DNA of 61,376 bases, filler included, from Hausera hauseri (Eukaryota), in assembly GCA_046269625.1 (NCBI GenBank). It is 10 parts of 10 records of this genome, joined end to end, with 100 filler letters (N's around TTAATTAATTAA, not from the genome) between each part and the next. Parts side by side here need not be neighbours in the genome. Positions count along the whole stretch, not along the records: positions 23,291 to 27,688 come from JBJURY010601111.1; 9 more parts are not named here. The stretch is one strand, 5' to 3'. Made by a program: the position numbers and the translations under genes. Positions 23,375 to 26,968 of the stretch are shown one piece after another; within the stretch, counting starts at the first letter, position 1; each line of letters starts with the position of its first letter. The notes below the pieces were generated by a model. It made no database searches, was not told the origin of the DNA, and was given only the letters and a program-made list of their open reading frames with translations.

Positions 23375-26300
23375 TTATTTTTGATTTGCATGTTTCACAT
23401 AATTTGTTACAAAATTTTCAATTTTCTTCGTGTTAATTTCAGATGCACCACTTGTCTCAATTTTTGTCACGGCTTTCTTCATAATCCTTTTGTAATCATC
23501 TTTGCTAATGATTCTTTTATTGTACGCCGGTATCAAGAATCGTTTAACTTCCATGGCAATTCTTTCCTGCCATTCATGACGGGTCGGAAAATCACTTTTC
23601 AATCGCTTTTCTTTGTCAATTTTTTCTTTATTGTTTTGTTGAATCGAATTGCTTTTGTTTTCTTTCAATTTAACATTTGGAGACTTCAATTTAGGCATAA
23701 CTTCAACTTTCAATAAGGGTGAATTTTGATCATTAATCATTGTATCAGTAGAACTTGGTGTTTCTTTACATTTGTTAACATTTGAATTTGGCAAGTCTAT
23801 TAAATTTCTATCATCAGAATCTGTGCATAGTTTCTTTTTCTTTATTGTTTCCATATCTCTTTCCGTATTTTCTCTCTTTCTTTTACGACTTCTTGATGCT
23901 TTCAGAATTTTGCTGCTTTGAGGGTTTTTCTTGCTTACCTCTACGTTTTTATAAATACCCATTAGTTTCTGATTTTTACAGGACGATAGATTATCCATTG
24001 AAACTATTTCTGACTTTATACTGGCATTTGTCAATATTTCAGTTACCAATTTGAAACAGTCGGAATTTAAAAGGCTACCAACTAGATACGTATCTGACGT
24101 TAATTTAATTCGAACAACATTCGGACTCAAACGAGATTTAAAATTCAGATCAATGTGTTTCCAAATGCTACACACCGATCCGGATATGACACAATAGTCT
24201 TTTTTTCTCACTCCTAATTGACATGAGCATCGTCGGTTTTCTAATACATGGAGACAACTGTTCATACTTTGATTGAATGCTTTTTTCCATAAGTCTGATG
24301 CATTTTGTGTCTCTATTTCTATCCAGCTTTTGTGAAAGTCTTCCATTGATATCTGATTTTCAGGAAAACATGGCGTAATTATCGACACCGTTCTGTCATC
24401 ATTGGATTCTTCATTGACAATTGCTAGTGCTACAATTGCTTTCGACGAAGTTGCTAAACAGAAATGCCCGTTTTCCTCGTTCTCATTGTATAACTCCAAT
24501 GCACTTTCCCATTCAGTCCCATTGAATATACTTTTAACTTTGTGTACAAACACACTGCCCGAAAAAAATTGAAAATGTTTAGTTTGTGTAATTTCAATAT
24601 TTCTGTCTTCACCATCGATATCTTGTGCTCCATAATCAAATTCGTTTGAACTCTTCGCTTCTTTGATTTCTTTGTCCAGTAAATGCATAAAGCATCTAAA
24701 CACACCATTCTGTACACTTAGTGGAATAGACAGAATTCGATTGAGAAATTTCTTTACGGAAAACTTATCATCACTCTTTGAAAATAATCCAACATTTGTC
24801 AAATGAATTTTGGCTAATTTTTGGAACATTGACTGGCCAAATACGTCGAAACAACTTTCAGGAAAATTTTTCAAAGGTATATCATTTTGAATGAGGTGAA
24901 AGAGTTTGTTGCAAGCTCGAACCCCATATTTATTTTCAATATTGAACTGATTCAAATCTCTGGTTTCTGAAGTTCGTCTGTCACCTTGAGTGAACGCCCC
25001 GAGTGACTCAAGACGCTTAGCAATTGATGCAACAAATCGTTTTTCACCGTCCAGATCCGATATCAGAAAAACATAATGTGGAGGAACTAACTGATTGGAT
25101 CTGTGGGTTCTGCCAAATTGTTGAATGATCTTATCAGCTGACCAAGGTAACTCCAATGTTATATGAATTCTTTGATTCGTATTGGAGAATTTTTTATCAG
25201 AATGTAACGATATTCCAGTGCTGGCTACATCGGATATGATTGCCACTTGTTTTTGTCCATTGTTAAATGATTCTTTTTCAAACAAATTTACCTTTTCAAC
25301 GGTTCTTATATTAAGAGTTCGTGGCTGATACTGAATTGAACCATTAGTATTCAGAATTATTCGACCTTTTCGGCCCGTTAATTCAGAAACATTATCTGGA
25401 CCTCCAAGTTTACAAATTAATTCATCTAGATAATTACTCGGTAACACGTTTTGGATATTTTCTATAGTGTGAAGTAAATCCGATTTCGTTGTGTTATCAA
25501 ATAAATCTATCAGAACAATGTGAGATTTTTCAATATTCCCATCTGACTCCTCTGATGAGGTCTTTTCGCCGGTTAGGAACTGTTTCACAATAACGTAAGC
25601 CGCTGAAGGAAACTGATCCAATTGCTCAGAATTATCATTTATAAATTCGCTGACGTTGGCCTCGCCTGTAGACTGGATTCCAATGACGACTGATTTGTTG
25701 TCCATTAAAGACTTTTCACTAATTTCAACACATTTAGCAATTTTAGCAGAAAGACAAAGTTGTCGGAAGAATCGTTGATTCGTTCCCCAATACAACTTCT
25801 TCAATATTCCGTATTGTTTTGCGTTAATTATTTCTTCCTGAAATATCCCATCAATTGATTTATTAATTTTGCTCCACAACAAAACCGACAGATCATAAAC
25901 TGTTCTGAATTTGTTATCCTTCAGATAGACATTGGACGTTTCTGCCATCACTATTTCGAATGTCACATTTTCAAAACTGATTTGTCGAGACATGTAAAGG
26001 CCCTTTGCTTTCATTTCCATAGTTAACATTTCCAGTGCACCAACATTATGTTTTTCCAGAAATTGTTCAAAATTCGAAAATGTTTCAAAACCACTCATTT
26101 TACCCCACAATCCTAGCCGAGACATGTAGCCCATATGTTTTGGTTCTGAAGCTCCAGTTGCACTCACGTAAACAATTCGACTATTTGGAAGAGCCACCTG
26201 AATTTCGTTGACTATTTGAGCGGTTTTTGAACTTTTGGCAATTAAGTTTTTTATTTTATGACATTCGTCAAATACAATCAGACCATCAAAATTCGGTCCG

Positions 26301-26968
26301 CACCAATCAATAATTTGATTAAATCTGCTTCTGAATTGTCCAGATGTTTCTTTACAATTGAGAGTACTGTATGACATAAACATAACTCCGCTCTCCTTTG
26401 ATACTGGATTGTACGACATTTCTGTTAAAGAAAATAAGTCCGTATTAAAACCAATGTCTTGTAAATCTCTGTTTGCGTCTTCTTTAAGTAAGTTATTAAT
26501 GGACACCCAAATAGCTTTATTACGATTTGACATGGCATTCTCATAGATCATGCCAGCAATAGTTCTTCCTTTACCTACACCAGTACCATCTCCAAGGAAA
26601 AATCCTGCTCGGAATCCGTTTGGCAATATTTCTTCGTGTTTCTGGCATGCATAAATTATTGCCTCAACTTGAGCATCTGATAATCGCCCATCCTCAAATA
26701 TTTCCTTTGGTAGTTTTAGTTCGTATGTTTGTTCTGGTGGCCTCACAATCGCCAATGAATATGACTCGACCAACGAGTGCGGATGAGGATAGCCTATATT
26801 GGTCACAGATGGTTTATATTTTTGAAATGTTTCGTTTCTTGACAAATTGTTATCTTTGAACAAGCTTTCCCATTCATGTTTCGGTAATGTTATTCGATTG
26901 ATATCCAGTGCCGAATTACTATTTGTTATATCTGAGAACATTGTTGTATGAAAATTAAGTATTAACAT
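23375..26968 (-). CDS. SBNO: Strawberry notch-like SF2 helicase (intronless, 1197 aa) with C-terminal PHRF1/SCAF11-like domain
   Basis: HPHSLVES, LSDAQVEAIIYACQKHE, GFFLGDGTGVGKGRTIAG, FDECHKIKNL, YVSATGASEP, HITLELPWSAD, QQFGRTHRSNQ, GEKRFVASIAKRLESLGA.TQGDRR, FLNRIL; AATAAA just after the stop (23361-23356). Start codon uncertain. Confidence 0.93.
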   Translation of the reverse strand: MLILNFHTTMFSDITNSNSALDINRITLPKHEWESLFKDNNLSRNETFQKYKPSVTNIGYPHPHSLVESYSLAIVRPPEQTYELKLPKEIFEDGRLSDAQVEAIIYACQKHEEILPNGFRAGFFLGDGTGVGKGRTIAGMIYENAMSNRNKAIWVSINNLLKEDANRDLQDIGFNTDLFSLTEMSYNPVSKESGVMFMSYSTLNCKETSGQFRSRFNQIIDWCGPNFDGLIVFDECHKIKNLIAKSSKTAQIVNEIQVALPNSRIVYVSATGASEPKHMGYMSRLGLWGKMSGFETFSNFEQFLEKHNVGALEMLTMEMKAKGLYMSRQISFENVTFEIVMAETSNVYLKDNKFRTVYDLSVLLWSKINKSIDGIFQEEIINAKQYGILKKLYWGTNQRFFRQLCLSAKIAKCVEISEKSLMDNKSVVIGIQSTGEANVSEFINDNSEQLDQFPSAAYVIVKQFLTGEKTSSEESDGNIEKSHIVLIDLFDNTTKSDLLHTIENIQNVLPSNYLDELICKLGGPDNVSELTGRKGRIILNTNGSIQYQPRTLNIRTVEKVNLFEKESFNNGQKQVAIISDVASTGISLHSDKKFSNTNQRIHITLELPWSADKIIQQFGRTHRSNQLVPPHYVFLISDLDGEKRFVASIAKRLESLGAFTQGDRRTSETRDLNQFNIENKYGVRACNKLFHLIQNDIPLKNFPESCFDVFGQSMFQKLAKIHLTNVGLFSKSDDKFSVKKFLNRILSIPLSVQNGVFRCFMHLLDKEIKEAKSSNEFDYGAQDIDGEDRNIEITQTKHFQFFSGSVFVHKVKSIFNGTEWESALELYNENEENGHFCLATSSKAIVALAIVNEESNDDRTVSIITPCFPENQISMEDFHKSWIEIETQNASDLWKKAFNQSMNSCLHVLENRRCSCQLGVRKKDYCVISGSVCSIWKHIDLNFKSRLSPNVVRIKLTSDTYLVGSLLNSDCFKLVTEILTNASIKSEIVSMDNLSSCKNQKLMGIYKNVEVSKKNPQSSKILKASRSRKRKRENTERDMETIKKKKLCTDSDDRNLIDLPNSNVNKCKETPSSTDTMINDQNSPLLKVEVMPKLKSPNVKLKENKSNSIQQNNKEKIDKEKRLKSDFPTRHEWQERIAMEVKRFLIPAYNKRIISKDDYKRIMKKAVTKIETSGASEINTKKIENFVTNYVKHANQK

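Follow-up and report, generated by a model that had tools for sequence, protein, structure and literature searches.

Open reading frame and flanking sequence

The window analyzed here is a stretch of 61,376 nucleotides (nt) from Hausera hauseri (GenBank assembly GCA_046269625.1), composed of ten parts of ten records joined by filler, and the piece examined was positions 23291-27688 (4.4 kb; record JBJURY010601111.1). This piece carries a single long gene whose predicted product combines a Strawberry-notch (SBNO) helicase core, a basic linker and, at the extreme C-terminus, a SCAF11-like domain. A preliminary description of the locus, made from the sequence alone, had proposed an intact, intronless helicase of this kind fused to a domain resembling those that bind the C-terminal domain (CTD) of RNA polymerase II (Pol II). 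Positions are those of the window throughout, and all features of the gene lie on the minus strand.

The sole long open reading frame (ORF) of the piece (23375..26968) is complete, with an ATG start, zero in-frame stops and a terminal TAA (23375-23377), and encodes a protein of 1197 amino acids (aa). Stop codons in the other five frames numbered 0-26 per segment, as opposed to none in the coding frame, and neither the 120 codons of the linker nor the 196 codons of linker plus tail stayed open by chance in any of 20000 shuffles. The coding region has a GC content of 29-38%, compared with 20-23% in the flanks. At the 5′ end the frame is bounded by an in-frame TGA (26981..26983) located 15 nt upstream of the ATG, while past the 3′ end an AATAAA polyadenylation-type signal (23356..23361) begins 14 nt beyond the stop codon. 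The ORF is real, well beyond chance expectation.

The claim that the gene is intronless can be upheld for the 3.6-kb ORF only. A candidate splice acceptor, consisting of a pyrimidine-rich run ending in ttctcag, lies 12 codons into the ORF (26932..26958), and upstream exons could exist if it were used. No candidate exon was found in the 720 bp upstream of the ORF. A second ATG (M10; 26939-26941) is located immediately upstream of the AG in the candidate acceptor. Searches of the piece produced no Rfam match, and repeat searches returned no flanking duplications or noteworthy terminal repeats. On the plus strand, an antisense ORF of 111 aa (23381-23716) lies opposite the tail and linker, and the tail segment is free of stops in its reverse frame. 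This ORF seems to mirror the K/N-rich AAA and AAT codons (TTT and ATT on the other strand) rather than to represent a gene.

SBNO helicase core

The unbroken frame with SBNO motifs that had been described initially was borne out both by Pfam domains and by invariant alignment columns. The N-terminal ATPase lobe (AAA_34, PF13872) covers aa 61-346 (25931..26788) with a score of 381 bits, and the C-terminal lobe (Helicase_C_4, PF13871) covers aa 512-782 (24623..25435) with a score of 311 bits. Motifs were inspected in an alignment of 35 sequences, made up of the query and the 34 relatives that match it best. The Walker A motif GDGTGVGKGR (G126-R135; 26564-26593) and the SAT motif (aa 269-271) occupy invariant columns, as do D234, E235 and H237 of the DECH box (aa 234-237; 26258-26269) and Q616, Q617, G619, R620, H622 and R623 of motif VI, QQFGRTHR (Q616-R623; 25100-25123). 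Downstream of the two lobes, the SBNO alpha/beta domain (PF25373; aa 819-915; 24224..24514) is strongly diverged, with a weak match in the query (33 bits, cut-off 24) and E-values as good as 2e-46 in relatives. It is followed by the canonical SBNO C-terminal Cys/His-containing region (aa 916-992; 23993..24223), as delimited by the consensus, the ends of BLAST alignments and the end of the folded core in an AlphaFold2 model; by BLAST, the region alignable to relatives runs to about aa 987. The full SBNO signature is thus present, with all catalytic motifs intact.

At the other end of the protein, BLAST against the 150 best SBNO representatives placed the start of the query core at about aa 40-46; in most relatives the core is preceded by 80-900 aa. 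Judging from these alignments, the long N-terminal region absent from the ORF has been either lost or encoded outside this exon. The short N-terminus is no bar to SBNO membership, as the N-terminal region is not a conserved defining domain of the family.

C-terminal linker and SCAF11-like domain

Drosophila Sno (P0004) and five other relatives (P0007, P0011, P0013, P0014 and P0017) end within about 4 residues of query positions ∼985-990 (BLAST). Because canonical SBNOs stop about 4 residues past query position ∼987, the final ∼200 aa of the protein constitute an extension. Its first part is an added K/N/S-rich linker of ∼135 aa (aa 993-1127; 23588..23992), which is predicted to be disordered from its composition and from predicted local distance difference test (pLDDT) scores of 27-44. 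The basic runs reported previously are present at residues 1028 (RKRKR) and 1043 (KKKK), forming a candidate nuclear localization signal (23831-23887) with a spacing that we take to be reminiscent of a bipartite one. Two exact copies of a 16-nt direct repeat (plus strand, TTTTTCTTTATTGTTT) lie in the linker (23621-23636 and 23835-23850, 214 nt apart), and both encode K-rich motifs; this hints at growth of the linker by internal duplication of low-complexity sequence.

The second part of the extension is a SCAF11-like_C (extended-SRI) domain, PF23030, at aa 1121-1192 (23393..23608). With a cut-off of 27, the profile reached 61.8 bits when the full protein was scanned and 69.2 bits when the tail was scanned by itself, and the match covers positions 10-82 of the 95 in the model. 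The same tail matched the model of the classical SRI domain (PF08236) weakly (15 bits, E 0.03). In the ESM Atlas, the clusters nearest to the tail carry the label ‘SCAF11-like, C-terminal domain’ with PF23030 and SRI (0.93; 205 of 256 features), in agreement with the PHRF1/SCAF11-type assignment of the preliminary description. The tail coordinates given there, 23375-23581, were correct, with the Pfam match starting slightly earlier, at 23608. In word searches, the tail had no 5-residue word in common with known members of the PF23030 family.

Structure prediction was performed on the full-length protein using AlphaFold2 and the 35-sequence alignment. The model has a confident folded core at about residues 55-992, the low-scoring linker (993-1127) and a separate three-helix bundle, with helices at about 1130-1150, 1156-1172 and 1180-1196. 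The same three helices were obtained when the tail was modelled alone, at pLDDT 83-93. Comparison of the tail with solved structures returned the Set2 SRI domain (2c5z) at rank 38 in Foldseek (template modelling scores 0.54/0.53 over 78 columns) and at rank 50 in VIA-align 2 (Z 5.5 over 70 residues), in both cases amid many unrelated helical bundles. The predicted fold is compatible with an SRI-like domain, but the search was non-specific. As the fold search does not discriminate, the domain was assigned on the basis of its sequence profile and Atlas features. Sequence searches of the Protein Data Bank (PDB) gave only chance matches above E 0.1 for the tail and none for the full protein.

Read support across the junction

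One public sequencing run, here called X1, holds the locus, with 89% of sampled words found and low-depth contigs of roughly 5x. These contigs tile positions 23291-23695, 23727-24833, 24836-25754 and 25763-27426, leaving an unbridged stretch of 31 nt within the linker (23696..23726). The first contig carries the tail, its 3′ flank and 87 nt of linker, and the next has the remaining linker and the end of the helicase. The junction between helicase and tail is therefore partly supported by reads: no loose ends or conflicting joints were seen in X1 contigs at the edges of the 31-nt hole, although the hole itself is not spanned.

This hole leaves room for an assembly artefact, in which the helicase ORF and a SCAF11-like terminal exon from a different locus would have been joined within the low-complexity linker. 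An in-frame join would arise by chance about 1 time in 3, and X1 is possibly not independent of the assembly. However, neither flanking contig ends in loose sequence of a different kind, and the tiling has comparable small breaks at other places (24834-24835 and 25755-25762). Furthermore, the linker has the same K/N/S-rich composition in both contigs, with ∼265 nt of it on the side of the helicase and ∼87 nt on that of the tail. The X1 contigs are also not a mere copy of the assembly, because 9 substitutions and one inserted T separate them from the window. Taken together, we consider an artefact very unlikely.

Five of the differences between X1 and the window are in coding sequence and produce K38A, a silent change at D39, N40K and I443M, with the ORF intact in X1. 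Four differences fall within 9 nt (26849-26857; K38A, N40K and one silent) in a poorly conserved N-terminal stretch at a depth of 4.65, and represent either a small haplotype patch or low-depth error. Upstream of the gene, X1 breaks at 27427-27525 and 27540-27570 in an AT-rich region, with loose ends and the T inserted after 27556, which suggests that a polymorphism or the edge of a repeat lies some 500 bp ahead of the ORF.

Rarity of the architecture among SBNO proteins

A HMMER search of 1.84 billion representatives resulted in 9700 SBNO-like proteins. The query is 42-44% identical to the best SBNO representatives and 35-44% identical to members overall, with named top matches from a sponge, Schistosoma, a nematode, Drosophila, carp, lamprey, a mollusc, tardigrades, a wasp, Artemia and Intoshia. 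The 34 best representatives and the next 39 of eukaryote size were scanned with Pfam, a set of near relatives beyond which an independent SBNO-SRI fusion might exist in a distant lineage. PF23030 or SRI was present in none of these 73 nearest relatives, and PF25373 was present in 60 of them. Likewise, phmmer found no match to the tail in the 150 best SBNO representatives, even at E 10. Both counts agree with the earlier statement that canonical SBNOs do not end in such a domain, and they show an architecture that is not widespread, as does the literature, in which our searches found no paper joining Strawberry notch with SCAF11, Set2-Rpb1 or a retrogene, and none naming SCAF11-like or PF23030.

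Broader databases gave the same picture. The exact query sequence was not among about 15 billion proteins. Word searches of 5.8 billion 90% clusters, which are able to reveal relatives hidden inside 50% clusters, produced no match for the tail (residues 1118-1197) within SBNO-length proteins, for residues 790-1010, or for the tail alone, and no relative was found in IMG/VR or JGI metagenome contigs. Accessory modules of other kinds did occur on SBNO cores among the 73 proteins scanned, namely PHD fingers (4), an HMG box (1), UBA domains (3) and FGT1 zinc ribbons (3). From these domain predictions, the SBNO family seems prone to gaining targeting modules, and the SCAF11-like tail appears unique in the survey. 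The novelty of the gene lies in its combination of a known helicase family with a known Pol II-binding module, a combination absent from the relatives surveyed and from the literature.

One long-branch SBNO, P0034, from a 9189-bp Logan contig, is also exactly 1197 aa long; its core is preceded by 52 aa, and a PF23030 tail is absent. Its grouping with two ENA metagenome proteins (P0052 and P0068), which share a very long branch, is weak.

Phylogeny, divergence and selection

Phylogenetic analysis placed the query inside an animal-type clade, as opposed to an algal/protist clade, with a support of 98 (FastTree, 65 sequences) and with 93 by the Shimodaira-Hasegawa-like approximate likelihood ratio test (IQ-TREE, LG+C20 with posterior mean site frequencies, 28 sequences). 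The query branch is long, and neither tree settles its position within that clade. Its end branch measured 1.67 against a median of 0.58 in the FastTree analysis (65 rows), and 2.39 against a median of 0.54 (4.4x) in the IQ-TREE C20 analysis (28 rows), in which known fast lineages have end branches of 0.9-1.25. Across the 35-sequence alignment, the query retains 82% of the columns that are ≥90% conserved in the others, compared with 88-99.6% for the remaining sequences, and most of its departures at conserved columns are conservative (L/I, V/I, A/S, M/L, E/D and R/K).

An origin in a virus or mobile element, for example as an integrated giant-virus SBNO-like helicase, was also weighed. SBNO-like helicases do occur in viruses and bacterial elements, the matches include proteins of 3000-6000 aa, one match carries an N6_Mtase domain, and one ESM Atlas neighbor cluster is half Nucleocytoviricota. 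The query nevertheless groups with the animal-type clade, lacks an IMG/VR relative, carries the PF25373 domain seen in most eukaryote-sized relatives and sits in a piece with no noteworthy terminal repeats. Such an origin is extremely improbable.

The preliminary description had seen in the intact frame a sign of either selection or recent origin. The first of these was supported and the second was not, because the branch is very long, yet the ORF is open and its motifs are complete. As read from the sequence comparisons, the gene would be old and fast-evolving, a pattern that fits long-term purifying selection on a derived function rather than recent origin or decay. The alternative, an unexpressed or decaying retrocopy that has remained open through luck or youth, could draw on the lowest conserved-column retention of the 35 sequences and on the lack of any RNA run holding the locus. 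Of the four codons at which X1 departs from the window, three have non-synonymous changes, although these are too few to mean much at a depth below 5. At ≤44% identity to any SBNO and with a very long branch, the gene is old, and an old pseudogene in DNA of 29-38% GC could not keep 1197 codons open or every catalytic motif. Decay is accordingly quite improbable.

A further explanation accepts the same protein but regards it as the only SBNO orthologue of its lineage, a fast-evolving, intron-poor animal lineage that added the tail, with no retrocopy or paralogue involved. Several points are in line with this: the unsettled placement within the animal-type clade, the existence of other long-branch animal SBNOs (Intoshia, Artemia and tardigrade copies), the lack of visible retroposition scars, and an AT-biased composition that inflates branch length, the composition of the query having been flagged as unlike that of the alignment. 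However, the end branch of 2.39 far exceeds those of fast lineages in the same tree, and the canonical N-terminal region is missing. In addition, a single exon of 3.6 kb is atypical of animal SBNO genes. On balance, we regard a sole orthologue as somewhat unlikely.

Proposed function and origin

SBNO proteins are conserved, essential transcription co-factors that act in Notch, Hippo and plant heat-memory pathways, and their biochemical mode is obscure. Mouse embryos in which Sbno1 is knocked out die before implantation. Against this background, we propose that the locus holds an intact gene kept by selection, which encodes a derived, animal-type SBNO ATPase/helicase of superfamily 2 (SF2) with a linker and an extended-SRI tail that would dock on Pol II. 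We assign this reading a probability of roughly 0.6. With regard to origin, the odds are about even that the gene is a retrocopy-derived, fast-evolving paralogue that has acquired the terminal portion of a SCAF11/PHRF1-like gene. Such a history would account for the one-exon ORF, the absent N-terminal region and the fast evolution of the gene.

In the proposed mechanism, the tail would dock on the CTD of elongating Pol II phosphorylated at serine 2 and serine 5 (Ser2P/Ser5P), and the flexible linker of ∼135 aa would allow the ATPase core to work on chromatin or nucleic acid in the vicinity of the polymerase. The basic runs may provide nuclear import, replacing the lost N-terminal region. The fusion of the tail would hard-wire an association between SBNO and Pol II that is made in trans by canonical Sbno1. 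One interactor of mouse Sbno1 is FACT, an elongation histone chaperone (PMC5389439), and Polr2a and Polr2b are found in proximity to Sbno1 (PMC12289961). As for the tail, the C-terminal SRI of PHRF1 is needed for co-precipitation of Rpb1 and prefers Ser2P and Ser2P/Ser5P CTD (PMC7392320). The purified SCAF1 SRI binds phosphorylated CTD peptides only, with doubly phosphorylated Ser2P/Ser5P peptides preferred, and SCAF1 function is restored when the CTD-interacting domain (CID) of SCAF4 takes the place of the SRI, which identifies it as a Pol II recruitment module (bioRxiv 10.64898/2025.12.08.691990). By analogy with these proteins, a selected and functional CTD tether, in which an SRI-type domain attaches a lineage-specific SBNO to elongating Pol II by its Ser2P/Ser5P CTD (a ‘Rosetta-stone’ fusion), is predicted at slightly short of even odds.

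The tail could instead be a genuine PF23030-type bundle that does not bind the Pol II CTD, serving another protein contact or persisting as a remnant of the captured gene. Its sequence is diverged, its match to PF08236 is weak and the evidence from its fold is non-specific. Moreover, binding specificities vary in the family, with yeast Asr1 binding Ser5P according to the discussion in PMC7392320. On the other hand, the PF23030 score is well over threshold and the domain occupies the extreme C-terminal position that it has in PHRF1, SCAF1 and SCAF11. Both family members tested bind the phosphorylated CTD (PMC7392320; bioRxiv 10.64898/2025.12.08.691990), and canonical Sbno1 is already close to Pol II (PMC12289961). 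A tail of this kind without CTD binding is in our view unlikely.

Several observations weigh against a selected helicase that docks on Pol II through a captured tail. Among the public sequencing runs searched, no RNA run contained the locus, a result that bears on expression, the 5′ end and exon structure. The 31-nt stretch in the linker is unbridged, and X1 may be the source sample, and so possibly not independent of the assembly. The structural comparisons did not single out SRI, and a PDB sequence search returned no solved PF23030 structure. The low retention of conserved columns points to possible relaxed constraint. Finally, neither a poly(A) remnant after the 3′ end nor target-site duplications were seen in the piece, as retroposition would have left; at such divergence and age, these scars are expected to have been erased.

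If the docking helicase proposed here is correct, the fusion would constitute independent evolutionary evidence for a link between SBNO and Pol II, and would point to the elongating, Ser2P/Ser5P-marked polymerase as the place where SBNO proteins act. SBNO-family ATPases in general would then act co-transcriptionally at the polymerase, a directly testable mechanism for the family. As a compact protein (1197 aa, one exon), the H. hauseri helicase could lend itself to expression for studies of SBNO ATPase activity in the context of Pol II.

Comparison with known systems

Relative to Strawberry notch, SBNO1 and SBNO2 from Drosophila, vertebrates, tardigrades, flatworms and sponges, the query has the same lobes, alpha/beta domain and Cys/His region, and every helicase motif. 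It differs from the family in its C-terminal extension of ∼200 aa, in having no N-terminal region of 150-800 aa, and in a branch 4.4x the median. The tail invites comparison with PHRF1, SCAF1 and SCAF11, members of the extended-SRI family (PF23030) that was defined by Rebehmed et al. (2014, FEBS Lett), as cited in PMC7392320. As in those proteins, the domain lies at the extreme C-terminus after a long basic low-complexity region. It is predicted to form a three-helix bundle. However, its sequence is far diverged from theirs, and the host protein is a helicase rather than a RING/PHD E3 ligase or SR-related factor.

A parallel in design is RECQL5, which is among the SRI proteins listed in bioRxiv 10.64898/2025.12.08.691990. 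Both proteins combine an SF2 helicase core with a C-terminal SRI-type module, which binds Pol II in RECQL5 and in the query would be the tether to the phosphorylated CTD, and the query would be the second SF2 helicase with an SRI-type tail, after RECQL5. The helicase families are unrelated (RecQ versus SBNO), and the SRI subfamily is classical in RECQL5 but SCAF11-like in the query. The resemblance is one of convergent architecture and not of whole-protein homology. Lastly, the query shares with plant FORGETTER1 and other module-bearing SBNOs a trend in which the SBNO core repeatedly gains targeting modules; the modules of those proteins read chromatin or ubiquitin, and none is an SRI-type Pol II CTD module such as the one predicted here.

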